Assembly (NCBI RefSeq): GCF_021869535.1
Contig: NW_026262723.1
Location: 100,998,001 to 101,062,000 of the forward strand
Reading direction: 5' to 3'
DNA length: 64,000 bases
From: Mytilus californianus
Lineage: Eukaryota
Part shown: positions 5,301-64,000 of the stretch, one piece after another
Numbering within the stretch: position 1 is the stretch's first letter
Layout: each line of letters starts with the position of its first letter
Notes under the pieces: generated by a model
Told to the model about the DNA's origin: nothing
Database searches by the model: none
What the model saw: only the letters and a program-made list of their open reading frames with translations
Program-made: the position numbers and the translations under genes

Positions 5301-8300
5301 TTTGTGGTTTATCAATATTATATACACCCTGTTTTACTTTTTATGAAAATATATAAAAAAAATCCATCAGAAGAGACTCAGTTATTTTTCCTTCATTTTT
5401 CTATTTTAAGGTGGTACCAAACACCTTGACTAAAATTAATTTGGCTCGTTTAATTTTCAAAAAATTTTGACAAAATATTTACTTTGACCCTTTGAAAAAA
5501 AATATAAAAATTTCAAAAAACTTGAACCACACACTTTATCGGAAAAATTTCATTGGATTCATAGCAGTTTGACCAATACTAATTTTGATCATTGAGAAGC
5601 TTAATATTTCCTTAACAATAGAATGTGATTAAAACGTTCAGCTGATTTTTACAGAGTTATATCCCTGTAGTGTTATGTACCACCTTAAATCAAAAGTTTC
5701 TTGAAGATTACTTACTCAATGTTAGCAATGAGTGAATCATTAAATATAAGATGTTCATAAGACATTACTTCATCTTTGGGCGGTATGTACAGATTGTCTT
5801 CACTAATGACTAGAGGATTACTCTTCCCAAATTTTCTTGACTGAAATAATCTGAAATTACGGTTTTTGGTGTAGACACCTGAAAAAACCCACAAAATATG
5901 CAAAATTAAAGATAATACATACATAACTCAAAAACAGTAAAAGTGACCCCACCCATATCGTAACTTGACCTGTGTTTGGTGGTAGTAAGCATTGTGTATA
6001 AGTTTCAGCACAATTGGTTGTGGTAAAGTAAAGTTAAGAGTGCGGAACTGCAAATTCAGCAATTTTTCCATTTATAAAGGGACATAACTTGAGAACAGAA
6101 AAAGTGACGCCACTCAAATTTGAATTTGATCTGTGTATGGTGGTAATAAGCATTGTGTAAAAGTTTCATAATATTGGTTGAGGCAAAACTTAGAGAACAG
6201 AAATCAATTTAGGGACGTACAAGGGTAAACTGAATGTCCTCTCCGCCTACAGGCAGAGGCATAAAAAGGCCTACATAAATTAAAATACTGAAGGAAAAAA
6301 AACATGATTATGGAATACTCATTACCACTGACACTCTAAAAAATTTGTTTGATTGAAAAAAAAGTTGTAGAGGTTTCCAAATTTGCCTTGCATACCTTGA
6401 TCACAGAATAAAGTTTCTTCATTATTTTTGTTTCTAACAACCATTGATAGAAGTTCTTCCTCAGTAAATCTGTCCATAACTTTAGAAGCTTTATGATCAT
6501 TTTTATCCTGTTCCTGAGAATGTCTCGGACTATCTAATCTATTCCCACATGGTACTGTTTGTTCATCAGAGGAATTGTCAGATTTAGAGATGAATGATGT
6601 CTCATCAAAGTCTAATACATCAGACAAATTTTGTTTCAATTTGTTTATTTCTGCCTTCAATTTCTGTAATATGAACTTCACAAAATTTCCTGAAAAATAT
6701 CTTTTCTTTCAAAGTTTGTGTCAAATTTAAAACTTCATCAACTACAAAACTATTGTATAAACATGTTTACTTAAAAGTGTGATATTGGTTTGTGCAAAAA
6801 ACATGCTTCCCTAAGTTTACTACATGTACATAGACAAAAAGGTCTACTTTCAAGTGATATGTTATGCTGGCAATCGTTTTAATCATGGTGATTTTACAAA
6901 CTAAGAGTATCCTTTTAACTCTATAGCAGTAGCAATGTAAGGAGGAAAAACGACTGAATTTATCAATACACAAGTTCTTTGGTTATCATCATGAATTGTT
7001 TGATTGTTATAGCCTCAGTTTTACTCCCTGGTGTCATTTTAACTCTGTCATATAACCAACATATCCACTAATGTGAAACTGACATATCACCAATTGAAAT
7101 GTTCCTGGGTATGGCACTTACAAGATAGGACTTTGTGTGATGGTTGATTGAAGGAGGTTACACTAGATGCGTATTTGTTCTCCCTCTTATTTGTAGTGTG
7201 ATTTTGATTGTTTAACTCCCATTTTTCTGTTTTATACCTGAACATATAAGACATTAAATCAATAATGGTATACTATCTTTATATTCAAATGATGTAATTT
7301 GAAAATAAGGAGTGAAACATTACTCTTGTCTAATGACACTTGAACCTAACAACACAATCATTGGTAGTGTCTCAGGACCATTAAAGTGTCACATCTTTTT
7401 ACACAAGGTTTGAAACGTATGTAACAAAATATACAAATGTTACCACGATAAGTGGATATAAATGCTAACAGTTTTTGCAATCCTCTGTTAAATAATACAA
7501 CTAGTGGTTAAAACCTACCAGCATGAATATTATCTTGAAATGCAGTTTTCTTCAATTGAAAAATCAAATGTCTACTGAACTTCTTTTCTGTGCTGAAAAA
7601 AAAGGTTTCATTATCGCATAACTTGTTTAATTATGACACGAGATAATCAGCTTCGTGAAAAATTCTATGACAGCCTTGTTTTTACAAAATACAATCAGAT
7701 AAGTTACAAGAATGTATTATCCTTATAAGTTTCCAATGTTAAATAATTTCAGCAACCTTCTGTTGTGCATGTCATTATAGGCCTGAGTAGTTTAAAGGTC
7801 ATGTTCAAATAAGCAAGAAAATAAACTCCAAATTCTTTGATAAATATGAGTTTTCAAAAGTACTAAATATATTTTGATAACCAATGTTAAATCTTTTACT
7901 TCCATATTTTTTTTTAATATATTACCTTGCATCCAGACTTAGCACATGTTCTTTTGAACACTTGACTTTGAAGATTTCTTCCATCCATCTTGTAACATAC
8001 TGGAAAATAACATATTTACATAACTTCTAGAAGTTAATGCTTTACAGAATTGAATGAATGGAGAGCACTTTATAATTTCCATTTGAGGAAAGTTAGGTTC
8101 ATAGCAATATTATCCAAATACTGTAAATTCAGAAATTATTGCGAGGATTTTACTGATGTGACTAGTTGACGATTGCAATAATTAGAACTCGCATTACTAA
8201 ATCATTTGAAAAGTTTCATACCTCTCATGTAGAGAATGGTATTGTTTCTCTAAATACACCAATCAATTCTAGTTGAAACCTGGGAATGAAATATCTATTT

Positions 8301-11300
8301 CCGTGTTGAAAAGCCTAGAAATTTTTTCTTATTATTAATATTTATTTTAATATCATTTGGACAGTTCTATTTATTGCTGTTTTTGTTTGGGTCCATGATA
8401 TCTTTAACTGTCCTTGAGTAACTATGGACCTTACCAACTTGACTTATTAACCTGTCATGTAACCGTCCTTGAGTAACTATGGACCTTACCAACTTGACTT
8501 ATTAACCTGTCATGTAACTGTCCTCTAGTAATTATGGACCTCACCAACTTGACTTACTGACCTGTCATGTAACTGTCCTTGAGTAGCTATGGACCTCACC
8601 AACTTGACTTATTAACCTGTCATGTAACTGTCCTTGAGTAACTATGGACCTTACCAACTTGACTTATTAACCTGTCATGTAACTGTCCTTGAGTAACTAC
8701 GGTCCTCACCAACTTGACTTACAGACCTGTCATGTAACTGTCCTTGAGTAGCTATGGACCTCACCAACTTGACTTATTAACCTGTCATGTAACTGTCCTC
8801 GAGTAACTATGGACCTCATCACCTTGACTTGATCATCTATGATTTAATACCTAAATTCTGCTGAAATTGTTGGTTTTATTTTATATTCTTTTGTATCACC
8901 AATAATGATTAATTGTTGTTTGCTTAACATCCAAAGGCAAATATCTGTGCATATTCAAGACGAGGACTTTAATAACAATTAATACAATAGGTACTGGTAG
9001 GTCATGTTATAGTGAGTTGACCAGGATGAAGGGCAGGAAATTTGGAATGCAGCTAGAAAATGAGGATACATTGGATAGGGACTGAAATTTAGCCTTGCAA
9101 CAGGCCAGCTACATACCTCTCAGAGTTGAACACCATTAATTACTGTGAAACACAATATATATTAATTCATTATTTATTTCCACAGATTTGTCTCAAGTTT
9201 ACCATGTGCTTTTATTACCATTATAGGCATGTGGACTTATACTCCACTTAGCAGATGAGATCAATCTCTAAACCTCTAAATATCAAAAGGCAAAACTTTG
9301 AAAATTGTTTTCAAATTGTTTGGTTTTTTATGTTTCTTGGTTATTGTCTGATCCAAGCATATGCCACACCTCCTTTTAGTTATGTTTCATTAACATTTGA
9401 ATATTAGAAATTCAGGGACCTGCAGTTTATGTATCAAATAAACATTTTATATCACGAACAAACAAAGGAAACACTGCATTCCCAGTTTTATATGAGATCT
9501 TGCTAATTAAGGCTGAAGATTATTACCTTTATAAAAATATCTGTCATTGTACTTCCATCACAATTTCTATTGTTTTCTTTGGGGAACTCTAAATCAAAAT
9601 AGAGCTTACATACTGATCCTGAAAGACAACAAATATCACTATCATCCTGAAAAGTAAGTGTTTAATCTACAAAAGAAAACAACAGTGCACACACTGAAAT
9701 GTATCAACTGCTTTACTGATGGTAATTGAATTTCTGTTGAAAGTCTGAGAGAAAAAGGTAACACAAGTATTACATAAACTTAACATTTTCAATGATCCAT
9801 GTAAATAAGGTAAAGGTCAGATAAACCCTGACATATGGACATGTAAGCCTAAAAATAATTTCATACACCAAATATAGTTAACTTAATGCTTATAGTACAG
9901 TACCTGAGAAACAGAATTTACTATGAAAACTTAACCGAGGAAACATGAAAATTAGGTCAAATCAACTCAGCCAGACATTTTCACCTCGCAATCATTCCAT
10001 ACACCAAATATAGTTAACCTATTGCTTTCAGTATCTGAAAAAGGGACTTAACCACGAAAACAATACAACTATTTCATATACCAAATAAAGTTGACCTAAT
10101 GTTTATAGTACATGAGAAACAGACCTCGCTATGAAAAAAACTAAACATTGACCAATTAACCATGAAAATGAGGTCATGGTCAGATAAACTTGGCCAGACA
10201 GACATGTACACCTGGCAATCATTCAATGCACCATTTTTGTCTTCCCAGGGTCTTATGTATGTTTTTTATTAGAACTACCAAAATGATGTCTATAATACAT
10301 ACCCTCTGGTATTAATTCATAATGTGTCTTCTTTTGTTGATCTAACTGCCTGAAAAAGGTCAACATATTTTGTTTTATCCATATGGTATGGTAAGAAATT
10401 TATTTTAATAACACATCATAATTTTCTAAAGCAATATCATATGGTAAGAAACTAACTTCACACACAAGCCAAATCAAGAAATAAACTGCACATATCTGGT
10501 AAAGAAACCATACCACCCCTTAATAAAAAGTTATTCTATATCATACTTACTTACCTCACTTATTGCAAATGTGTAATGTCCTTTTTATATTAAACCATCT
10601 ATTTCAGAAATGGAAAGGTAATAAAAAATATTTTCTTTTCATCTAAGAAAAAGTGAATTTAATCAAATAAAAAATAACAGATATTTTGTAGCTGTAAATG
10701 ATACAATACTGTGGATTCATTTATTTTCGTGGGTACCAATTTTTGTGGATTGAGGAAAAATTGCATTTTCATGGATATTTAATTTTGTTGTTTTGCCAAA
10801 GTCTGCATACAAGCCTATTGAAAATTTGTAATATGTTGAACATCTTTTTTGATTCACCTATAACCACAAAAATTGGTATCGAACAAATAATAATGAATCC
10901 ACAGTATCTAAAATTTATAGTGTGAAAACACACAAGTAAAATATAAAAATAAAGAATTGTGGTATGATTGCCAGTGAGATAACTGAATCAATGGCAAGAA
11001 AACCATACAACTGTAAAATATAAATCAATTGCAAGAAACCCATATAACTGTAAAATATACGTGCATACACCTGTGCATAGTGGACACATTCTACTGCATC
11101 CACATAGCACATACATATACATACAGGGGAAGATTCTAACTAATAATGTACCTATAATAATGCCAGAATACAGGATAAGATGCCACTAAAAACATCCTCT
11201 GTCCAGTTTCTGGTCCTAAACTCTCACTCTCAAAGGAAAATACATGAAGATCCTGAAATATAAAATATGTATACCATTATCCTCTTTACTAAATGGGACT

Positions 11301-14300
11301 CTCACAGAAACAAAACCATAGAATTTCTTGCAAAATAATATGAAACATATATGATATGACATTAGTAGATAAAACACTGATAAGTTTCCAAAAACATTTT
11401 ACCTAATAAGAAGATAGTATAGAATGTTTAAAGTTTTGTTTTGAACTTTTAACCAAACATACAGAGGTCAACTTTTTTCACTGCAATTAAAGCTCAAAAA
11501 TAAATTTTGTGTTGAAGGTATCCCTAAAAACCCTATTTGTTTTGCCACAAAAAGTCAAAATGTCTACCCTAGAGTTTTTCTTTGCACATTTCGTAATAAA
11601 TCTTTGACAAAATTGTTGGTCTCCACATATTGTCAATCTAAAAAAAATAATCCTACTTATTCAATGAATTGGGTTTCATATCAATTTCTACAAATTAAAA
11701 CATATTTCAGGATAATATGTATAGATTTTATTTGTATTGGTAATATTACCATGATTACAAGAGATAACTAGAGTGTTTGGAAAAAAGTCACTAACAAACA
11801 TCACAAATACATACACAAGTGATGACAGCAGATTATATGTGACCATTTTTGCAAATTGCATTAAAACTAATGGTAATCTGGAGAGAATGTTGTTTTCCGT
11901 AAATATGGATAGCTATGTATTGTAGAGATCAGACAGCTACAGGCATACAGAAAAGTATTTCTTATTCATTTATTTTGAATGTACAAAGGGTATAGCTTAA
12001 GTTGTCATAAAACCATAAAACATACCGAGGATTTTCTTCTGGCAAAGCTGAAAGCTTCCTGTTGTCTAAAAAATGTCTTCCAACCTACTGAAGGACCATC
12101 AATTCTACAACAAAAGATACACTGTATAAGAACTTAGTAACACAGATATTTTTTGTTATTTTGACACATTAACAGAGGTATCCCACATTTCTATATCAAA
12201 GTAACAGAAGAAAGCAAATTTAAAAAAAAAATAATTTGATCAAAAATAAATATAAACGTGTACAAGTACACATAACGACAAGTAAATCTGTCAAGTTTGT
12301 TTATTTCCGGCATATGAGATTTTGTATTGAATTTTTCTGACAGAGTAACAAAAAAAGTAGACCAAATCTCTGTTTGGCTTTGAGAAACCCAGACATCAAT
12401 GTTATCCAAAAATAAAATAGGAAGTACACAACTTCACTTCCTGTAAAAAGGTCTGTGCAAGTTTGGTAGCATATCGTATCCAGTACACCCATCTATTACA
12501 GTGGTTGTCAGATTTGTCCACTCCTTCTCCTGGTAACCCCCTCCTCCTACATTTCACATACTGCTGGTTAATATATTGTTTATTCTCTGGCATCCTGAAG
12601 ATACATGAAATATTTGCAACTGACATTACGCAACCATTAATAAATCAGTGGTGTACAAAACCAAATCAGCTAAGATCTACCTTTAGGATTCCTATCTTCA
12701 CTTATTGATTGGTCAACTTCAACTAAACCCCAGATGTTTGGCTAACTCATTTTAAGTTTACATGTACTGATGAAGTATTCACTACAAATCATACCACTTA
12801 CCTAGGTCGGAATTCCTTTGGAATTTTGTCAGATTTCAGCTTCTTCACATTTTCATCCAAAACTTTGCTTATGTGATGTATTTTCCTAAAAAAATCAAAT
12901 ACTGTAATGCATCACTGAAAAATTATGATACAAAAAATTAAATAAGAAATTGCATTTTGCAAAGCCAAGTGCGATCTCTGTGATTGATTTTTGGCAAATC
13001 CAAAGATTGTTCTTTCAAAAAGGCCACAATTTACAAAACTCAGTACTTTTTGAAATAAAAAACTCAAAGTGCTATATAAAGATATCTGATTAGCCTGATA
13101 TCCTAATTTACTGTACACCACCTTTGAAGGGAATATTTAACAAATATTAAGCAAAAGCATCCATATACATGTATGGAAATGGAATGATTAAACAAAGAAT
13201 AATTTGAACATGTTGAATCTGGAATAATTTTGAGTTCTGGAAAATTGAAAAGAAATGCATGATGAAATCTAACCCAATTTAGGAGGGTTACCCATGCATG
13301 TTTAGTTTGTTCATACTGAAATATCAGTGAAAGTAAAATTAACCTTAGTCATGCACGCATGGCTGACCCTTTTTGGTTGGGTTAGTTTTCATCATACATT
13401 TATCAATTTTCCAGAAATCAAAATTATTCCAGATTCAAATAATTCCTTGTTATTATTTCCCTCTTGTATTGAAGTAATTCATTGTATACATGATATATAT
13501 TTCTAGGAAACTGATCCAAGCTATATATAGAAGACTTCATTTTATGCTATGAATTGTGATGAAATAAACAGAAGTATTTGTGTCATGAAATAGAAGTTCC
13601 TGCACAGTATTATTTATTTTGGAATATTATATCCCCTGTGTTGTGACTGTGACTTTGTCTACATGTCCGTGATTACGCAGTACAGTGTTGACGTTGTTTT
13701 CCCGTATTTTGACGTTGTATGATAGTGACGTGAGAGGGGATAGATGTGTTGACGAATGAACAAGATACCTGAATGGTTTGAAGTGTCCAGTGTATGCCGT
13801 GTGTTTTGTATTTTATGTAACGTCTGTATAATACATGCAGTGTGAATAAATCGTGACTGTTATTTTCTACAAAGATGGTGTTTATTTATAAATTATGAAC
13901 GCTCGGAATTCTACGTTTACAACATTGGTGGCAGCGAAAAGAAACGGATCTACGCGGACACATGATTTATTTCTTTATACAGACGGAATGCTTTTAAAGA
14001 GGGGAGGAAATATGAATTTTAACACTGAAGGTACCGTAAACAAATTTTTTAGACCGTACGATTTTGACCAAATGTATACTGTACAACAGAAGGACGATAC
14101 GGCACTGGAATACTTTACAGTAATCAAAATTAAAATTCACCATTTTAAAACTGATATTGGAATTGTAACAGATTCGACCACAGAATGTTCAGAGAAGTAT
14201 CTAGTCGGCAAAAGTGGACGGAAATGAATCAAACATTTTTGTTCGGTGTTAGCATCAAGGATAAAATAATAATCTAAGGTGCAAATTGGAAAGAAAGCAA

Positions 14301-17300
14301 AATTGTCTCCTTCAAATATAATTATTTGTTGTTTTATGTGTCTATAAATTATATTTGTCAGCATTTCATTTTAATATATAATAACCATGAGCCTGTGTGA
14401 CTTACCAGAGTTTGACGGTTCTGAACTTTTTGAAGGTTTCTGGATGAAATTTTCTATTTTAGCCGAACGTTTTAATTTGTCACCTAGTGATATGGCTTTC
14501 TATTTGGTTACTTCACTGAGAGGTAAAGCTTTAGAATGTGTATCGTATTTACCACGTGGAGATCTTTATAATGTATCTGTTTTGTATTCTGCATTGAAAT
14601 GTAGATTTGGTGATATTGAGACGGCTCAGATCTGTAGAATGAAATTGAGAAATATAGCTATGTTTGAACGTGAAAGTGTTCAAGAGTACGTATGTAGAAT
14701 TGAGATAAATGTTCAAAAATCGTTCCCTGGTGTGAACGATGATTTATTAGTGAAGCTGATTACTGAGTATGCTATGTATGGATACCCTGATGGTGATATT
14801 GGATATAGAGTTCTGACTAAAGAACCGTCAACAGTTAGTGAACTTATCAAAGAAATATTGTGGCAGGAACACTGCAGACAAAATTTAAAGTTAGTAGTAA
14901 AATCGCGTTGCACCGGCGACAGTGACTTTGAGAAAAATTCTGAAATAGGCACTAAGCGTAAAATTAATTTCAAAGAGTATGATATTGGGACGAAGAAAGT
15001 TTCCAAAAATACTGACTTTGATATAAATGACAATAGTTTATATAACCAGAAATTGGAAGAAGACAAATGTACTGTTGGTAAATTATATGTATGTAATAAT
15101 TCTGTGTATCCGAGTGAACAGTCTGTTTATTGCATTGTTGAGTCATATGAATTGAAATATGAAGAACTTTGTGACGTTTTTGAGGCAACTGAAGTTGAAG
15201 TTGCAAAAGTTTCGGACGAAGAGATAGCTACCTTGGAACTTCCGCGCGTTGAACAGCCAGCAGTGATTACTGGTGGAACAGACGTTGTTAGCGTTAGAAA
15301 GTTTGAATTGAAATGTCAGGTATTTAGTGACATTGTTGAAGCAACTGAAGTAGAAGTTGCACAAGTTTTGGAGCTAGAGAAAACTAATTTGGAACGTTCG
15401 AACGTTGAACAGCAGACAGTAATCACTGGTGCAGTAGAGGCAGTTAACGTCCGAAATTGGTCACCCTTTGAACAAAGTGACATTCTGTTTGATACGTCTA
15501 ACAGTATTGATGCGATCAAAAATAAAGTACCTAGAGTTTCAACATATACTGGATTATCGACACCAGTATATAGAAAGGACTTCCCATATAAAGAACGTGT
15601 ATGTGAAAATGAGTTCACGCAATTCAGAGATAGCAATGTCTATGAAAACAGTTATAAACATGATGTATGCTCCGGTGGATCGTCTATGTTACCTGAGATG
15701 AACTGGAAAACACGAAAACGCAATTTGTCTTGATTTATCTTTTATTTCGAGGACGAAATATTCTTGAAAAGAGGGAGTAGTGTTGTGACTGTGACTTTGT
15801 CTACATGTCCGTGATTACGCAGTAAGGTGTTAACGTTGTTTTCCCGTATTTTGACGTTGTATGATAGTGACGTGAGAGGGGATAGATGTGTTGACGAATG
15901 AACAAGATAGCTGAAATGGTTTGAAATGTCGGAGTGTATGCCGTGTGTTTTGTATTTTATGTAACGTCTGTATAATACATGCAGTGTGAATAAATCGTGA
16001 CTGTTATTTTCTACAAAGATGGTGTTTAGTTATAAATTATGAACGCTCGGAATTCTACGTTTACAACACCCTGTAACAAATATTACAGTATTTATTCAGA
16101 ATAGACTAAAGGGTATAAAAAACATGAACGAATAGTATGGCATTGTTTATAACAAAGTTTCCAGGGGAACTTCTAGCCTTTATAGTCATTATACGGTGAA
16201 CCTACAGACTAATTAAAATTGGGGTTTATTAAAAAAATCATGAGTGCACATGCTAAAATGTCTTGCTTACTTTATTGTTCATGATTTATTTTTTACTCGA
16301 TAGTCCTAAAAATAAAGTTTTACTACAAGTATCACATAAACTTAACATTATCAATGATCCATGAAAATGAGTCAAGGTCAGATAAACCAAGCCAGACAGA
16401 CATGTACAATCATTACATACACCAAATATAGTTGACCTATTGTTAATAGTATTCAAGAAACTGACCAAACAATGAAAACTAAATATTGACCAATGAACCA
16501 TTAAAGTGAGGTCAAGGTCAGATGAAACCTGCCAGACAGACATGTACACCTTACAATCATTCCATACGTCATGTATATACATGTAGTTGACCTTATTGGT
16601 TATAGTACCTGAGAAACAGACAAACAGGAAAACTTATCATTGACCAATGAACCATGAAAAGGAGGTCAAGGACAGATGATACTTGCCAGACAGACATGTA
16701 CACCTTACAATCATTCCATACACCAAATATAGTTTACCTATTACTTATAGTATTAGAAAAACAGACCAAAACACAAAAACTTAACATTGACCACTGAACC
16801 ATGAAAATGAAGTCAACTGTTACTGTCAAGGTCAGATGAAACCTGCTAGACTGACACATACACTATACAATCATTCCATACACAAAATATAGTTGGCCTA
16901 CTGCTTACAGTATCTGAGAAAAGGGCATAATCATGTAACTATAACATTGATCACTGATCCATGAAATGAGTTTGAGGTCAAGTGAATCCTGTCTGACAGA
17001 TATGTAGACCTTGCAAGGAACCCATATATCAAATATAGTTATTCTATTACTCATAATACATGTAAGTGAGAATTTCACAAAACAAAACAAAAAAACTTTT
17101 TTTAAGCAGTTGCTGAACCATGAATATGAGGTCAAAGACATATGACAGATGGAAACTTTGTAACATAAGGCATCTATCTACAAAGTGTGAAGCCTCCATG
17201 TCTATAAACCTCTTAAATATAAAGCTTAATACAAATAATTAATGCTGCTCCTGCCAAATTGAAATCCATATGTCTTGCATTCTGAGACTTTTGTCACAGG

Positions 17301-23477: not shown

Positions 23478-26400
23478 TCAGTCCTTGAGTATTTTGTCTA
23501 TTGTATCAGTTTCATGTTTGTATTCTTTAATAGTGAGGCTGTCAAAGAAAGATGCTGGTGTCTTTTTTACTGTATTCTGTGCTCGTTTGATTCTTCCAGC
23601 TTGGTTTTTACCTTTCGGTAAAGGTTGCCGCTGTGTAATTTTGTTGTATAAACCAGCAAAAGCAGGTCCTTTCTCTCGATTGCGAGCATATAAATTTCCT
23701 TTCATTCTAGACAGAAGAGATCCACCAAAATAAAGTGTTCTTAATTCATCTATACGTTTCATTTGTTCTGGATCATTGTCCACGTTAAGTTCTGAGAATG
23801 GCAGGCAACGATAAACAGCAATCTATTAAAGCAGAAAAAAGAGACCTGATAAATAAGTTTAACTTCAATATTGAAAATAGTGCATGGTTGAGGGGTGTCG
23901 GTACAATTTCACACTGCATTGTTATTTTTTTATTTTAATATGATTAGTATTTATGTATACTAGTTGTAGAGTGTGCTGAGATCTTTGCAAATCGCAAAAT
24001 AAAATAGAGATTACCGAAGGAAAGTTCGGAGAAGACAACATTGCTTCAGAAGTTGACATTTCAATTTGCAAAATCTAGACAGCCTGTATATCTCAGAGAA
24101 TACGCAACTGGACATATTATCTTTATTTTTTTTATGCATAATACATTTCTCTGTTAACAAAACCTTTAGAACAAATTTATTTTGAAATTTGGCAGCGAAC
24201 ATATAACTATTCATATTTAGTTTTTCAATTGAGATATTATAAAGGTATATGTTCCGTACGTTTTATCTATCATTGACATAATACATGTACCGGTATATTG
24301 TTATATAGTAGATTTCGTTATATGTATACTAGCAAGCGAGTTAATATAGCCTTTAGGTCTGAATTTCAATCAGAATGCTTAAAATCTATTATTACCCATT
24401 AGTGTACACATTTATTATATTCTTATTAATCTTGCTGAAATAATTAGACAAAATGTATTCAGCTATTGTTTATAGAATTAATAGCGATCGGTTCAGACTC
24501 GGGATTAAGGCCGTTACAACTGGATCTACATACTGCTAAAACCTCTATGTATGCCTTACTTTTTCATTTACAAGTATTTGTATACTACTCGTAACTAGTA
24601 TCATGTGACTAGTATTTTAATCATTTTGACGACGCATGCACATCAATGTCAAAAGTTACTCACCGATGAATTAATTTCAACAAACTTGTCCATTTTAGGC
24701 GGCATCTTGTGTCTCATTGTCTTTTTGTATGATTTTCCCAGTATGTCGCTGCAAACACCACCGGTTTTGGGGGGTTTTGGACGGCTAGCTGGGATTGGCC
24801 TTGCAGTTTCCGGACCATCACCGTCATCACATGGTGATTTGGTTTCAGGTGACTGATCATCTTGTACTTTTTGTTCAAACTCCGCTTCTTCGGCTTTATC
24901 ACGGATAATTTTCTTTGCCCCATCCAGTGCTTTCTGCCATAATCCTGAACGTCCTCCGTTTAATACCTTTAAAGTACTGGCCGAACCTGATCGACGCAAA
25001 TCAGATGGAATACGGATTTTTGTTGTAGGCATCAGATTTAATATATTTGGAATCGATTCCCAGGTTTCACCAAACGTACCTATATAAAGTCCATTCATGG
25101 TCCAAAGTCGAATGGCACAATCGCTACTTGCAGTTATTAGAAGCTTATCGCCTTCAACATATTCTATTTTGTTGATTATTTTTGTGTGTGCCCGATATGA
25201 GTTCACTAGAAAGGGCCATTTAAGTGTTATCTTTGGCAACGAAGATGCTGGTGGTGGTCTGTTGTTGATGTTGGATGGCATTTTGTTTGAAGAGATAAGG
25301 ATTTCCGGTGGCTGCTCATAACAATATGAAAATTTTACAAATTTGAACGTCTCATTAAGATATTTCCATCGCTTTGCCCTTTGTGCCTTGGTAAGCACTT
25401 TCTTTGTGCAATATTCTGACAAATCCCACGTTTTAACGTATCCACAGCTATCTGCTGTGAATAAAAAATTATTTTTTTCATCAGTACACATTGTATGTAC
25501 ACCTTCTCCTACTTTATGTGCAGCATTAAATTGACCTAAAAGGCCTCCTGGGTGGTAAATTGACCACGCACGAATCCATCCTTCTGCTCCGCTCGTAATT
25601 AAGATGGCTGTTTCCCCGCTTTCTCTATCACGAGATTCTAAAAATAAGATGCATTCAATAGACGACTCATACATTTTACAAAGTTCGTCATAATCTTCTC
25701 GTCTACTCAAGGCCCTACTCGGAGGTTTCTGGTTAGTTCCATCTACGGGTGAATCTTCTTGGTTCCTATACAATGGGAGTAACGGATGTTCTACTGGTGT
25801 ATCATCTAAGCGACCGATTTTCTGAGACCACTTGTTGTCTTTCATTAAGACGTTTCCTTTAACTCTGTTTAGCATGTCTTTGTTTTTATGTAAAAAACTC
25901 GCTTTTCTTACTCTCTTTTTCATCATTTCTTCTGAAGCAAGATTCTCAAATATATTAGACGAAAAACTTACTTCACTTGATTTAGCTTCTGATTTTCCGC
26001 TTTGGGTTGTGTCTGGTCTGCCATCTCTATTCTTGGTTTTGGTATCTCCAATTGGCTTTATCCCCTTTCCTGCATTTAGGATACAGTAAACGTGTCCAGT
26101 GTCACGTGACCACACAACCACATCGCCATCGTAAGCACCAGTTGCGATGATATTGGGACTTAAATAAGACATGCACAAGATATCTTCGTTGTGTTTCTGC
26201 CTCCAATCTTTTCGATGCTCCTCTCCTCTGCCATCAATGTAAATATGCATCTTCCTCGACCAACCAGTGGCAAATATTCGATGATTGATACTAACTATGC
26301 CGGTTATTTCTAATCCATCCGGAGTGTTAAATGTCTGCAGGCAACTTCCATTATTAAAATTCCATACTTTGATACTACCGTCCATAGCCCCAGTGATAAC

Positions 26401-28116
26401 ACGCCGTAGTGGACCATCAAATGCCATTGCTGTTATTTCTACCGGTACTACGATGCCCTTCTGCTCACGAACATGTGCATTGGCAGCATGTATAATTTTT
26501 TCTCCAGTATACAGATCCCAAACACTGATCACGGAATCCTGACAAGCACTAACTACGAATTTGAAGAGTTTGTTATATAGAACACAAACCACTGGTTTGG
26601 TATGGGACTCGATTTCTGCAACCCTTTCATCCTCGTTAGATTTCTGAAGCACGGCAAGTTGATTTGTAGCTAGGATTAATGTTTGTAAGACTGGGTTTAA
26701 GTAAACCGCTGACAATGGAGTTTTTCCAAGTTTGACTACTCTACCACTAACATGCTGAAGACATGATTGGTCTTTCATATCGAATACTCGTATAGTACGT
26801 TTTTTGTCAATACCAATGATCTGGCCTTTTCGGGAATTAATGACAACTTGATTAATTGGCTTCGTGTATCCTTTCAACACATACATAGACTTTGCATTAA
26901 CTTGTGGATTCCATGCTCGGATACAGTAATCCATGCCACCAGTAACAATGATGTTATTTCCTGGACAGTAATCAAAACAAAGGACTCCCTTATTGATCTT
27001 AAAGGTTGAGTTCGTCTTTTTCTTTACGAATTCGTACAAGCAAAGTGAGTTTTCGGAAGCTTGACTGCAAGACAAGAAGGAGGTCAATTCTGGAATATAC
27101 CTTAATCGCAACACCCAATCAGTATGTACTCGGTTGAATCTATATCCTCTAGCACCTTTGTAGAAACCTCTTATAACTTCAGGCAAGCTAATTCTTTTAA
27201 ATCCACCTTTTTTCACACCAAAGGAACCAAACAGGCCTCCACGAAGGCATTGCTTGAATACAATTACACAAACGCTTCCCGACGTGTCTCCCCAAAGGAG
27301 TTTTGATTCGTTCATATCATTTAAGTCTACCCAGTAATGCATGCACGTTATACAGTCATCCAGTCCTATCAGATGATATTTTTTCCTAAAATTGTTTCCT
27401 TTTAGATCAAAAACAGTAATGTCACGGTCTGTTGACGAAATTGCTACCATTCCTACATTGTAAATGCACGCCAAATCGATCAACCATGGCTGTGTTGCTC
27501 TCTCTCCAATCTCCGATATTGTATTATAGCTTGTGACAAACTTCATATGCACGTTCCAAATTGACAAAAGTCCCTCCTTGCTGATCGTAACATACCTACC
27601 ATTTGTATGGTCTATATAACAGCGACCGTCTCGTCTCCGCACGTTCGGGTAAAATAGAATCGAAACAATTACCTCTCGGTGACGACTCGGAATTTCTTTG
27701 AGTTCGTGGGGAAAAGGTATTTCTTTCATCATTTCTTTCATCAGTAACTTCCCTTGATATTCTAATAGATTATATGTTACATATTCCTCCCAATCAACCA
27801 CTCCGTCACAATTAGCATCTACCTTCATGAAGAGAAGCTCAATTTCATCATCCGTCATTTTGTTACCGAGAGTGTCCCTCATTGCTCTTTTAAACTCTTT
27901 TATGTTTAAACCATCTTCTGCATTACCAAATATTGATTGCAGTTCCGCATACCGAACTTCTGCTGCAATTTTATCGGGATCAAATTCTTTGCTTTTCTTT
28001 ACTCCTGATTTCCGTCTACTTTTACTAACGTTCTCAGTATCAAGAGCTGAGAATGATTTGGTGGATTTAGTGAATTTAACATGGTTCTTAATTGGCGGCA
28101 AATTTACCGACGACAT
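23478..28116 (-). CDS. EF-hand and WD40-repeat protein (WDR49/CFAP337/WDY-like), 2 coding exons, ~1265 aa
   Basis: Exon 1 is 28116-24664 and ends at a consensus donor TCG|GTGAGT. Intron 24663-23823 ends TTTAATAG|. Exon 2 is 23822-23478 (IAVYRCLPFSELNVDNDPEQ...KILKD*), phase 0. There is an N-terminal EF-hand (LFMKVDANCDGVVDWEEY) and many WD repeats (..GH/H...V..; TGAYDGDVVVWS; TASSDCAIRLW). The exact ortholog within the WDR49/WDR64/EFCAB8 family is not resolved. Confidence 0.88.
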
Positions 28117-60659: not shown

Positions 60660-62600
60660 GTTTCTGTGGAGATCATTCAATTGGAACCTTGAATTTCTCC
60701 CTATTAACCAATTGGAGATTGATAAAATTTGTCCTACAAATAATAGATATTGTAAATATTACAATACTTTCATTGTACAATGGGGGCTAACTATGCATCA
60801 CTTATTGCAGACCTGTTTCTGTATTGTTATGAATCACAATTTATGTTTAAAATTAGCCACAATCAATCAAAAAAACATCGGATAAACAAATTTAATTACC
60901 TTTTTTTTTTTTTAGATATTTGGAGGATATTTTTGGCTCTCAATAATGACAACTTTAGTATGTACACTCAATATATATGTTCCTGGTACACTAAAGATAT
61001 TTATCCTATTGAACTTACTTTAAATAAAGCTAATACTAACAATGATCACTACTTTAAATAAAGCTAAGACTAACAATGATCGCTATTTTAAATAAAGCTA
61101 ATACTAACAATGATCACTACTTTAAATAAAGCTAAGACTAACAATGATCACTACTTTAAATAAAGCTAAGACTAACAATAATCACTACTTTAAATAAAGC
61201 TAAGACTAACAATGATCACTACTTTAAATAAAGCTAGGACTAACAATGATCACTACTTTAAATAAAGCCAAGACTAACAATGATCACTACTTTTAATAAA
61301 GCTAAGACTAACAATAATCATTACTTTAAATAAAGCTAAGACTAACAATGATCACTACTTTAAATAAAGCTAATACTAACAATGATCACTGCCCTTTCAT
61401 TTCTAATGAGAAACTTAATACTAAAATTTAGGATAAAAGAGATCATTCTTCATTTTCTATTGTTAATTATTCGTTTTTAGATGTGACGTTCCCTTGGCAC
61501 CATCATAAGGTGTTTATTTATCTCAACATGTTTGATTTGGTTGTGTATGTAACAACGTATTTGATTTTAACAAAAGAAATCTCACCATTTCTGAAAAATA
61601 TTTACACCAGGGTTTTCAATATCACAAACTTGACAAATTTTACTTAATTTTATTTCAAAACAAGGACATCATTCATAAATATGAATCAATGTGTAGACGT
61701 CTTATACATTCATGCATGTCACATCCCATCTTTTATGGCAATATTCTATACAAATCATAAAAATGTCGTCATTCACCTCAAAAGATAACCAAACCTTTAA
61801 ACAGGCTTATTCTTAAGGGATATAGTTATGATGTCAAGTCATTAAAGATGGCATTTTTAAAAATTAATATTGATAAGAATTGATTGATTGATTATTTGGT
61901 GTTTAACACCACTTTCAGCACTATTGTGCTATTTCGTGGCGATCAGAATTAAATTTTTGGAGGAAGCTGGAGCGCCTGTAGAGAACCACCTACCTTTGAA
62001 CTCACAATTTCAGTGTTGGCAGGCTAGTGATACAGTGTAGTTTGACTACCTAGACCACTCACTCACCGAGGCCCCCACTCATGAGGTCTTTGCATCCGAA
62101 ATAAACACATTTATTCTAAAACCAGTTGTTGGCATGATACGGGTTATGTTTTTCTTGTATAATTTATGATGGCATGATACTAAACCCCTAACGGGAGGGA
62201 TTGTGGTTGATTTTCATATGATGAAGACATAACCTTTCGATCAGTTTAATTGAGGTCTGAAGCTGGCATGTCAGTAACTGCTAGTAGTCCTTTGTTAATT
62301 TATGTTGATCTTTGTCATTTGCTTATTTTCTTTTATTACTTATTCTAACATCAGACTCCGACTTCTTATGAACTGAGTTTTGCTGTGTGTTTGTTTATTC
62401 CACTTTGGCTAGAGTCAGGAACCTCTAGCCTTTGTTAGTCTTGTGTGTTTTTTAAATTTTGGATCCATTTGTATGTTTCGAAGTTTTGTGTGGGTGCGGA
62501 ATTTTCTCGCTGTGTTGAAGACCCATTGGTGGCCTTGGACTGTTTTTACTCTTTGGTTGGGTTGTCTCTTTGACACATTCCCTGTTTCCATTCTCTATTC
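60660..62600 (+). mobile_element. Degenerate Penelope-like RT element
   Basis: MGANYASLIADLFLYCYESQFM (RT motif), IYPIELTLNKANTNNDH and downstream homology to 21715-22940; frameshifts and stops. Confidence 0.65.
61021..61391. repeat. 34-bp minisatellite, ~11 copies, inside the Penelope-like element
   Basis: Unit TAAATAAAGCTAAGACTAACAATGATCACTACTT, period 34. Confidence 0.95.
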
Positions 62601-63416
62601 TACAATATGTATTGTAAAAAACTTAGCCTTTTACTAAGTGGGCAATTAAATTCACAAGTTGAGGAAGGGTGCACAATATTGCCAAAAGATGAAACAACAA
62701 ACAGCAAAAAAAAAAAGTGAATATTTAGCATCAGTAAGCCCTTCAAAGGGTAACTTAAAGGTGTTTGAGAAGGGTAAGCAATTTCTGCTACACTATTGGA
62801 ACACATTTTATTGCTTCACTCAAAGATAAATATACCCCACTGTAAAAGTGGGGCTATATTGCAATCACATTGTCTGACAAATATCTTGGTCACACTTTTC
62901 TCAAACTACAACACAGAATTACTTCATATTTGGTCACAGCTCAACATTGATGATTGAGTACTTTTCAAATCTTTTGAATAACTGCTTTCTGTTACCCAAT
63001 ACTTTGGATTTTTCATCATATTTTTCTCAGAAACTTTTCAACAGAATGACTTCATATTTTTGTCACCAGCTCAATAGTGATGAGCTTTTTCGGATCTGCC
63101 AGATAATTACTTCCTGTCTTTCGACACTTTAAATATGAGAAGTGGTTATATAATGCTTAGCACAACAATGTATGCATTCTTGTTAAACCTTAATCCAATG
63201 GGAATTACTTTTGTACTTTTAATTCCATTTAATGATTTGTTGACAGCTCAAATGGAAAATTGATTAAGGTATTGATGATGTTTCATCTTTAATGGATAAA
63301 ACTATTTTCAAATTGATGATTTTTAGAAACTTTAATGTAAAAAATTACTGTAACAATATAATTTAATTCGATATTTGCTTTAGAATTTCCTTTGGTTCCA
63401 TAAACTTAATACTGCT

Positions 63417-64000
63417 GATCCTGTGTACTGTAAACTTTATTTTGGTCAATACAATTGTTTATTTTGAGGATCCAGGGTACTGTTAACTTTATATTGGTCA
63501 AAACAATTGTTTATTTTGAGGATCCAGTGTACTGTTAACTTTATTTTGGTCAATATATTGGTTTATTTTGAGGATCCAGTGTACTGTTAGCTTTATATTG
63601 GTCAGTACAATTGTTTATTTTGAGGATCCAGTGTACTGTTAACTTTATATTGGTCAATACAATTGTTTATTTTGAGGATCCAGTGTACTGTAAACTTTAT
63701 ATTGGTCGATACATTTGTTTATTTTGAGGATCCAGTGTACTGTAAACTTGATATTGGTCTATACATTTGTTTATTTTGAGGATCCAGTGTACTGTTAACT
63801 TGATATTGGTCTATACAATTGTTTATTTTGAGGATCCAGTGTACTGTTAACTTGATATTGGTCTATACAATTGTTTATTTTGAGGATCCAGTGTACTGTT
63901 AACTTTATATTGGTCAATACAATTGTTTATTTTGAGGATCCAGTGTACTGTTAACTTTATATTGGTCAATACAATTGTTTATTTTGAGGATCCAGTGTAC
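63417..64000. repeat. 52-bp minisatellite, at least 11 copies, running off the window end
   Basis: Unit GATCCAGTGTACTGTTAACTTTATATTGGTCAATACAATTGTTTATTTTGAG. Confidence 0.95.

Follow-up and report, generated by a model that had tools for sequence, protein, structure and literature searches.

How a retroelement that encodes a capsid protein and leaves no room for the enzymes of retrotransposition comes to be inserted in a genome is the question raised by a locus of the mussel Mytilus californianus. The element lies in a stretch of 64,000 nucleotides (contig NW_026262723.1, positions 100,998,001 to 101,062,000 of the forward strand), called here the window. The original prediction, made from the letters of the window alone, described a long terminal repeat (LTR) element with paired 286/288-bp TG..CA LTRs, a 5-bp target-site duplication (TSD) CCCTG, a primer-binding site (PBS), a polypurine tract (PPT), an AATAAA in the LTR, an intact open reading frame (ORF) of 448 aa and no pol, and all of these were present as described. 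The analyses presented below suggest that the element probably belongs to a non-autonomous, Gag-only family of LTR retrotransposons of Mytilus, similar to the TR-GAG elements of plants, with Pol borrowed in trans. The features of the window copy are as follows.

13634-13638, plus strand: left target-site duplication CCCTG, identical to 16069-16073
13639-13924, plus strand: 5' LTR of 286 bp, TGTTGTGA...ACAACA, 97% identical to the 3' LTR
13827 and 13845, plus strand: TATAATA and AATAAA, respectively, within the 5' LTR
13926-13936, plus strand: PBS TGGTGGCAGCG, one base past the 5' LTR
13937-14386, plus strand: untranslated leader, holding the purine motif AGAGGGGAGGAAAT at 13998-14011
14387-14911, plus strand: capsid (CA) domain of Gag, residues 1-175, predicted to form two helical lobes (Pfam, AlphaFold2, Foldseek)
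14912-15733, plus strand: C-terminal half of Gag, residues 176-448 plus the stop codon, with a putatively disordered linker, repeats and a basic tail
15745-15759, plus strand: pre-PPT motif TTTCGAGGACGAAAT, palindromic, its stem enclosing an AGGA loop, exact in seven loci
15766-15777, plus strand: PPT GAAAAGAGGGAG, three bases ahead of the 3' LTR, the bases between them being TAG
15781-16068, plus strand: 3' LTR of 288 bp, starting with TGTTGTGA and ending with ACAACA
16069-16073, plus strand: right target-site duplication CCCTG

The unit bounded by the LTRs measures 2430 bp and, together with the TSDs, occupies positions 13634-16073. A direct repeat of 286 bp that is 97% identical and has matching flanks of 5 bp goes far beyond what chance would produce, and the direct TG..CA LTRs, the short TSD, the PBS and the PPT are the features by which an LTR retrotransposon is structurally defined. 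The two LTRs of the window copy differ by seven substitutions and two indel positions, which corresponds to a Kimura two-parameter (K2P) distance of 0.025. The AATAAA is found at 13845-13850 and 15989-15994, with TATAATA 18 bp before it in each LTR; it may lie in U3 or in R. The 448-aa ORF (14387-15733) is uninterrupted, is the only long ORF of the unit and stops 47 bp before the 3' LTR. Since the internal region comprises only 1856 bp, pol cannot fit in it. The window, which contains zero N runs, gave no match when searched by tblastn with a related Pol of 1367 aa (from the L010 contig, see below), and the Pfam scan of the ORF found no protease (PR), reverse transcriptase (RT), RNase H (RH) or integrase (IN) domain. 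An upstream ORF (13895-14227) overlapping the leader was considered as a coding sequence and rejected, as its end varies between copies and an early stop is present in the M. galloprovincialis copy L003; it was treated as non-coding.

Relatives of the family were found by word search only in Mytilus (M. edulis, M. galloprovincialis and M. coruscus), with 73-80% amino-acid identity. In the contigs fetched, units composed of LTR, leader, gag, PPT and LTR matched the whole 2430 bp at 85-87% in BLAST alignments. The window copy diverged by 11-13% from the others (87-89% whole-length identity), and the M. edulis and M. galloprovincialis copies by 1-7% among themselves. The following loci were analyzed, L001 and L003-L006 being LTR-bearing copies, with LTRs 85-88% identical to those of the window copy, and L002 a truncated fragment.

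L001, M. edulis chromosome OY782960.1: full copy, TSD ACCCC, intact 461-aa gag
L003, M. galloprovincialis: full copy, 3' end damaged
L004, M. edulis: copy with a foreign 617-bp insertion in the leader, 3' end damaged
L005, M. edulis: full copy, TSD CACAC
L006, M. edulis: interior disrupted, TSD ACATG intact
L002: family fragment without LTRs

Four perfect TSDs were thus recovered, all different: CCCTG in the window, ACCCC in L001, CACAC in L005 and ACATG in L006. The flanks of the copies are unrelated to the window flanks, and the insertion sites are non-orthologous across species. The LTR pairs are 97-99% identical, with K2P distances from 0.007 (L001 and L005) to 0.028. As the divergence between copies exceeds that between the LTRs of a pair, most of it arose before insertion, either while the lineages were replicating or between species. 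The junction leading from the gag stop through a 15-nt motif and the PPT to the LTR is identical in every copy that keeps this end; L001, the LTRs of which differ at only two sites, has lost approximately 10 nt of the PPT (9398-9423), and L006 lacks the gag-stop/PPT junction region. Altogether, at least six LTR-flanked copies without pol were found in three genomes. At least 14 annotated family ORFs are present in two M. edulis assemblies, and one cluster at 90% protein identity holds nine annotated M. edulis proteins from different contigs, several of them of 451-494 aa; these copy numbers derive from annotated proteins only.

The window element is therefore one copy of a transposing gag-only family, integrated as a 2.4-kb unit by staggered cuts of 5 bp. 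It had been proposed that the unit integrated as it stands, and this is borne out by the full copies of the same architecture that two other Mytilus species carry at sites unrelated to its own. The different TSDs and the shared gag-PPT junction, named at the outset as marks of an actively transposing family, were both observed, the latter with the losses in L001 and L006 given above. The reservation that only one such copy might exist has been removed by the family copies in M. edulis and M. galloprovincialis.

Some of the family loci show rearrangements. The L002 fragment (6326-9391) starts approximately 20 nt past the leader purine motif (element position 394), and its other end coincides exactly with the PPT. 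It adjoins a degraded fragment of a CCHC-gag and a protease, the latter 48% identical to the pol of L010. We considered L002 as a recombinant with a partner element; neither side of it carries an LTR or a PBS, the upstream gag is degraded, and the candidate origins of the fragment are an aberrant cDNA, a recombinant and a rearrangement. The foreign insert of about 617 bp in the leader of L004 (5050-5667) consists of two roughly 360-bp repeat units and occupies nearly the same element position (~400) as the breakpoint of L002. Pieces of the family Gag also occur within P0007, P0010 and P0014, proteins from gene models of M. edulis and M. coruscus and from unlabelled ones. They bear the annotations JNK kinase, hAT-dimerisation protein and TRPM2-like channel and are probably annotation chimeras over inserted copies.

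The protein encoded by the element was analyzed at the levels of sequence and predicted structure. A Pfam PNMA match was obtained at residues 11-111 of the ORF (E 3.6e-7; 30.2 bits with a cut-off of 25), and Retrotrans_gag scored slightly under its cut-off (21.4 vs 24.1 bits). A search of 1.84 billion representative proteins gave 745 relatives of Gag at E<=0.001. Among the best 150 of these 745, nearly all of those outside the own family align to residues ~5-230, the exceptions being Mytilus gene models with fragments of the C-terminal half of Gag. The AlphaFold2 model, built with 81 aligned relatives, had a predicted local distance difference test (pLDDT) score >94 for residues 1-175, arranged in two helical lobes. 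In Foldseek comparisons with the Protein Data Bank (PDB), this model matched the PNMA2 capsid (E 1.5e-5, template modelling (TM) score 0.66-0.70) and the dArc1/dArc2 capsids (TM 0.70-0.77), in both cases with a probability of 1.00, and the MOAP1, MLV, HIV and copia capsids were ranked lower. A PDB sequence search with the family profile returned only PNMA2, at E 0.36, and the look-up of the exact protein showed that the window ORF is not on record. A bilobed all-helical CA with detectable sequence homology is characteristic of the Ty3/gypsy Gag superfamily. Judged by homology and by the modelled fold, the ORF encodes a capsid protein of the Ty3/gypsy-PNMA Gag type, in line with the Ty3/Arc-like fold anticipated for it.

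The C-terminal half has a different character. Residues 176-448 are predicted to be disordered except for two long helices, which are set in two acidic repeats of 52 aa (nt 15148-15300 and 15304-15456; isoelectric point about 4.2), and the tail ends in a short basic KTRKR patch. Neither a Pfam match nor a PDB sequence match was obtained for this half. The element L020, described below, was considered as an intermediate form and dropped, the similarity of the C-terminal part to the downstream ORF of L020 being not significant.

To estimate selection on gag, the copies were projected onto the window codons and compared by Nei-Gojobori counting, which gives pairwise estimates from few sequences that are not tree-based. 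For the CA domain (codons 1-175), the comparisons of the window copy with L001, L003 and L005 yielded ratios of nonsynonymous to synonymous substitution rates (dN/dS) of 0.34-0.39, with dS of about 0.16, bootstrap 95% limits of 0.17-0.79 and Fisher p of 0.003-0.007. The CA domain is under purifying selection. The stretch coding for it is the most conserved large segment of the element, with 92.5% nucleotide identity and no indels, identity being lower in the LTRs (86-88%) and in the leader (88-90%). A dN/dS close to 1 among copies had been named as an outcome that would refute a family making its own capsid. The ratio came out at ~0.36, significantly <1, for the CA domain, and in the same three comparisons at 0.72-0.91, not distinguishable from 1, for codons 176-448.

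The cis-acting signals of the family recur in other elements. The PBS TGGTGGCAGCG is invariant in the window copy, L001 and L003-L006 and also in three further gag-only loci, L009, L007 and L020. The pre-PPT motif TTTCGAGGACGAAAT is exact in the window copy, L002, L003, L004, L009, L007 and L020, and shows a single C-to-T change in L001 and L005. LTR starts of the form TGT(T/A)GT(G/A)AA are common to the window family, L009, L007 and L020. A hairpin could be formed by the pre-PPT motif, but its folding z-scores (-0.1 to -1.8) did not reach significance, and no covariation is seen in the stem, which is invariant; an Rfam scan found nothing relevant. L007 and L020 share the leader purine motif AGAGGGGAGGAAAT, with one or two of its purines substituted. 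This motif resembles the PPT and is located 13-15 nt before the gag ATG in L007 and L020 and ~370 nt before gag in the window family.

L009 (M. edulis CAJPWZ010000437.1, 8670-13464) is a 4.8-kb gag-only LTR element with the TSD GCTTC, LTRs of 895 and 911 bp (K2P 0.015) that start with TGTTGTAAA, about 1.1 kb of non-coding DNA after gag and no pol. Its PBS and TTTCGAGGACGAAAT are the same as in the window element, and its product P0019, a CCHC Gag of M. edulis, is 36% identical in CA. L007 (Logan contig, 1-1227) combines in 1.2 kb an LTR end, the same PBS, a 321-aa gag with CA and CCHC, the same motif, a PPT and the LTR start TGTTGTGAA; its Gag belongs to the P0012 cluster, which includes M. 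edulis and M. galloprovincialis proteins and is 49% identical in CA. L020 (Logan contig, 1-1730; P0008), 57% identical in CA (E 3e-64), is laid out like L007, with the same PBS, a Gag with CA and CCHC and the same motif within about 1.55 kb, and its LTR starts with TGTAGTGAA. The contigs of these closest outgroup Gags are 1.2-1.7 kb long and show the gag-only structure, not full LTRs.

In the CA tree, the window family formed a clade with P0008, P0009 and P0012 (the L020 and L007 types) with 100/100 support, and a very long stem branch leads to it (1.7 substitutions per site). Its neighbours in an 18-row group (95/86 support) were the Gags of the L009 type and the group of P0015, encoded on L010. 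The gag-only state arose more than once or is old, and is maintained either way. We tentatively suggest, at somewhat short of even confidence, that the window element stands for an old and diversified Mytilus clade of capsid-only elements. At least four lineages, with CA identity down to ~35%, the same PBS and pre-PPT motif and similar LTR starts, would have persisted as obligate hyperparasites of a Ty3/gypsy Pol donor with their own capsid under selection, the window lineage having replaced the zinc knuckle by the acidic repeat.

The nearest relative with pol was found in L010 (contig of Logan SRR26215659). Here, the gag encoding P0015 lies directly upstream of a 1367-aa ORF for PR, RT, RNase H and integrase, and the CA of P0015 is 34% identical to that of the window Gag (E 4e-23). 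The arrangement of P0015 upstream of a separate pol indicates that this Gag lineage is one of Ty3/gypsy elements with separate gag and pol ORFs. L010 resembles the window family in its homologous Gag CA, placed as a sister group in the CA tree, and differs in being autonomous (PR-RT-RH-IN) and in the long N-terminal extension of its Gag. Its contig does not include LTRs or a PBS, and its 3' end lacks the pre-PPT motif. After pol, L010 has a third ORF (6309-7049; 246 aa) with a Cys/His-rich start and a charged remainder. No gag relative above 57% identity was linked to pol in the word search and among the best 150 of the 745 relatives. A metagenome scan for the pre-PPT motif together with the LTR start gave nine loci, eight of them bacterial chance matches; the ninth, L011, matched at a contig end, with no internal region. 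The single match of the viral-contig scan, in a contig of 76.8 kb, was taken as chance.

The PBS had been assigned to tRNA-Leu(AAG/UAG). This putative assignment agrees with the 3' ends of vertebrate tRNA-Leu. A single tRNA-Leu-like gene was present in the fetched Mytilus DNA (L001 2798-2878); its anticodon loop is irregular and its 3' end mismatches the PBS, and no tRNA genes were found in the window.

According to the mechanism that we propose, the RNA of the element would be transcribed from its own LTR and would carry the tRNA PBS, the conserved PPT-adjacent motif and LTR ends recognisable by integrase. The protein encoded by it would be a capsid-type Gag alone, without the nucleocapsid (NC) zinc knuckle, protease, RT and integrase. 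No enzymes are encoded, and Pol must therefore come from another element, which would carry out reverse transcription and 5-bp-staggered integration. The most likely donor would be a Ty3/gypsy element from the lineage to which the nearest pol-linked gag relative belongs, its Pol recognising the shared PBS, the PPT-adjacent motif and the TGTTGT...ACAACA termini. The capsid protein of the element itself would probably assemble, or co-assemble, the particle, and the candidates for RNA selection without a zinc knuckle would be the basic C-terminal patch or co-assembly with the partner Gag. The anatomy, the independent insertions of the family, the capsid fold and the selection on CA are observed; that Pol is supplied in trans, which element is the partner and any role of the own Gag in mobilisation are what we infer from these data.

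Several observations weigh against a Gag-only family that packages itself and borrows Pol. No autonomous partner sharing the LTR ends, the PBS or the pre-PPT motif was found among the fetched contigs, whole Mytilus genomes not having been searched at the DNA level, and the metagenome and viral scans were uninformative. A CCHC knuckle (C-X2-C-X4-H-X4-C), usual though not universal in Gags of the Ty3/gypsy superfamily, was not detected in any forward frame of any family copy, while the sister elements L007, L020 and L009 possess one, and the family Gag thus appears by its sequence to lack an obvious RNA-binding domain. The C-terminal half is nearly neutral. Among the fetched loci, a full open gag is retained only in the window copy and L001: gag is frameshifted inside the acidic-repeat region in L004 and L005, L002 is also frameshifted, and L003 has lost the start of the ORF. 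Broken gag genes hence occur in young copies, L005 being frameshifted despite only two LTR mismatches, which means either that an intact ORF in cis is unneeded for insertion or that the breaks took place after it. Most of these points would suit an element that is only a carrier of cis signals, similar to large retrotransposon derivatives (LARD) or terminal-repeat retrotransposons in miniature (TRIM), the Gag of which is not used for its own transposition and represents either an interfering capsid, as Fv1, enJS56A1 and Ty1 p22, or a decaying remnant. The frameshifts in young copies, the missing zinc knuckle or other RNA-binding domain and the near neutrality of the C-terminal half count in its favour, and the stem of 1.7 substitutions per site below the CA clade suggests a changed function. 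It is at odds with the purifying selection on CA, the best-conserved segment of the element, and with the four diverged gag-only lineages, which all keep an open CA-coding ORF, hard to explain if useless. TRIM and LARD elements have no internal coding capacity, and here an intact 448-aa ORF is under selection. Interference and self-packaging are also not mutually exclusive. On balance, a carrier with an unused Gag seems to us unlikely.

The Pfam PNMA match and PNMA2 as the best structural match raise the thought of a domesticated host gag gene of the PNMA/Arc kind that retains its LTRs, and the intact ORF, the selection on CA and the labels given to its relatives in RefSeq and UniProt (PNMA-like or uncharacterised) could be read in the same way. 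The PNMA label is nevertheless expected, PNMA genes being descendants of Ty3/gypsy gag. A domesticated gene would occupy a fixed orthologous host locus without LTRs or TSD, whereas the element is multi-copy, its insertion sites are not orthologous, its TSDs differ and its LTR pairs are nearly identical; it also keeps the full set of cis signals for reverse transcription and is broken in many copies, all of which makes domestication very improbable. A single internal deletion in a full-length gag-pol element would account for the absence of pol in the window copy and for nothing more. It is refuted by the six or more LTR-flanked copies without pol in three genomes, with a shared junction in those that have the 3' end, and the three further gag-only lineages and the lack of a pol-linked gag relative above 57% identity among the relatives compared also speak against it.

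The window also holds features outside the element. An inverted repeat at 13253-13401, about 240 bp to the left of the element, has 48-nt arms that are 79% complementary and 53 nt apart, and may be a remnant of the kind left by miniature inverted-repeat transposable elements (MITEs). Directly to the right lies a satellite with units of ~150 bp (16364-17058), which recurs at 1-264 and 9790-10260. Other arrays of the window have units of 55 bp (8350-8899), 34 bp (60948-61457) and 52 bp (63302-64000). On the minus strand, positions 24649-28116 hold an uninterrupted ORF of 1155 aa with an EF-hand pair and WD40 beta-propellers, which looks like an intronless host gene.

A gag-only LTR family in an animal host, and a clean, coding-intact example of it within a wider gag-only group, is the finding here. 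A family of this kind, probably mobilised by the Pol of another element, offers a handle on retroelement parasites that use Pol in trans and on the contribution of the capsid, CA being kept in four lineages and NC dispensable in one. It also accounts for a set of Mytilus proteins annotated as "PNMA-like" or uncharacterised and for some chimeric gene models, and is relevant to retroelement activity in bivalve neoplasia, where elements of the Steamer type serve as markers. Should the old hyperparasite clade hold true, plant TR-GAGs would have their first characterised counterpart in animals, and the clade would be a natural system in which to study why an element that parasitises another retroelement requires its own capsid.

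The closest of the known systems are the plant TR-GAG elements, defined as LTR elements of <4 kb with TSD, PBS, PPT, a single Gag ORF and no pol, the mobilisation of which in trans is presumed (PMC4350172, Chaparro et al. 2015). The window family shares with them the length below 4 kb (here 2430 bp), the single Gag ORF, the absence of coding sequences for PR, RT, RNase H and IN and the occurrence as a repeated family, with multiple copies and recent insertions. It differs in its host, a bivalve animal, and in belonging to a set of four or more diverged gag-only lineages with common cis signals. TR-GAG1 encodes a copia UBN2-type Gag with a zinc knuckle, whereas the window family has a Gag of the Ty3/gypsy-PNMA type with the knuckle lost and an acidic 52-aa tandem repeat. 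Gag-only elements had been said to be described mostly from plants, and the TR-GAG literature searched indeed concerns plants only. No gag-only LTR elements of animals or molluscs were found in this literature, an absence there that is no proof of absence, and searches for bivalve non-autonomous LTR elements gave only biv-TRIM.

Steamer, to the clade of which the original prediction had linked the element, is likewise a bivalve LTR retroelement with short LTRs, and its TSD is 5 bp long. The link was not sustained. Membership of the Mag clade, proposed from the Leu PBS and the 5-bp TSD, likewise has no support, the element encoding no RT that could be placed in a phylogeny. The Steamer PBS TGGTGTCAGAAG, described as complementary to Leu tRNA, as is supposed for the PBS of the window element, and its LTR ends TGTAACA..ATAAACA (PMC8905726) differ from TGGTGGCAGCG and TGTTGTGA..ACAACA of the window element. 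Steamer also has one fused gag-pol ORF, and fused gag-pol polyproteins numbered 0 among the best 150 of the 745 Gag relatives. In M. chilensis, MchSLE1 carries an Asn PBS and one ORF of 1376 aa (PMC11046912). PNMA2 and Arc/dArc have the same bilobed CA fold and are Gag-only coding units; they are fixed host genes without LTRs, in contrast to the mobile, multi-copy window element. HeT-A, a telomeric element of Drosophila, codes for Gag only and obtains RT from another element; it is a non-LTR element with a telomere-specific role. The window family resembles it in being Gag-only and dependent on a supplied reverse transcriptase, and differs from it in that HeT-A has no LTRs, PBS or integrase step. 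Finally, biv-TRIM is a non-autonomous LTR element of bivalves, M. galloprovincialis included, with a non-coding interior of 77-80 bp and no canonical PBS (PMC6934838). Both are non-autonomous LTR elements of bivalves, and the window family stands apart from biv-TRIM by its canonical PBS and its capsid gene.

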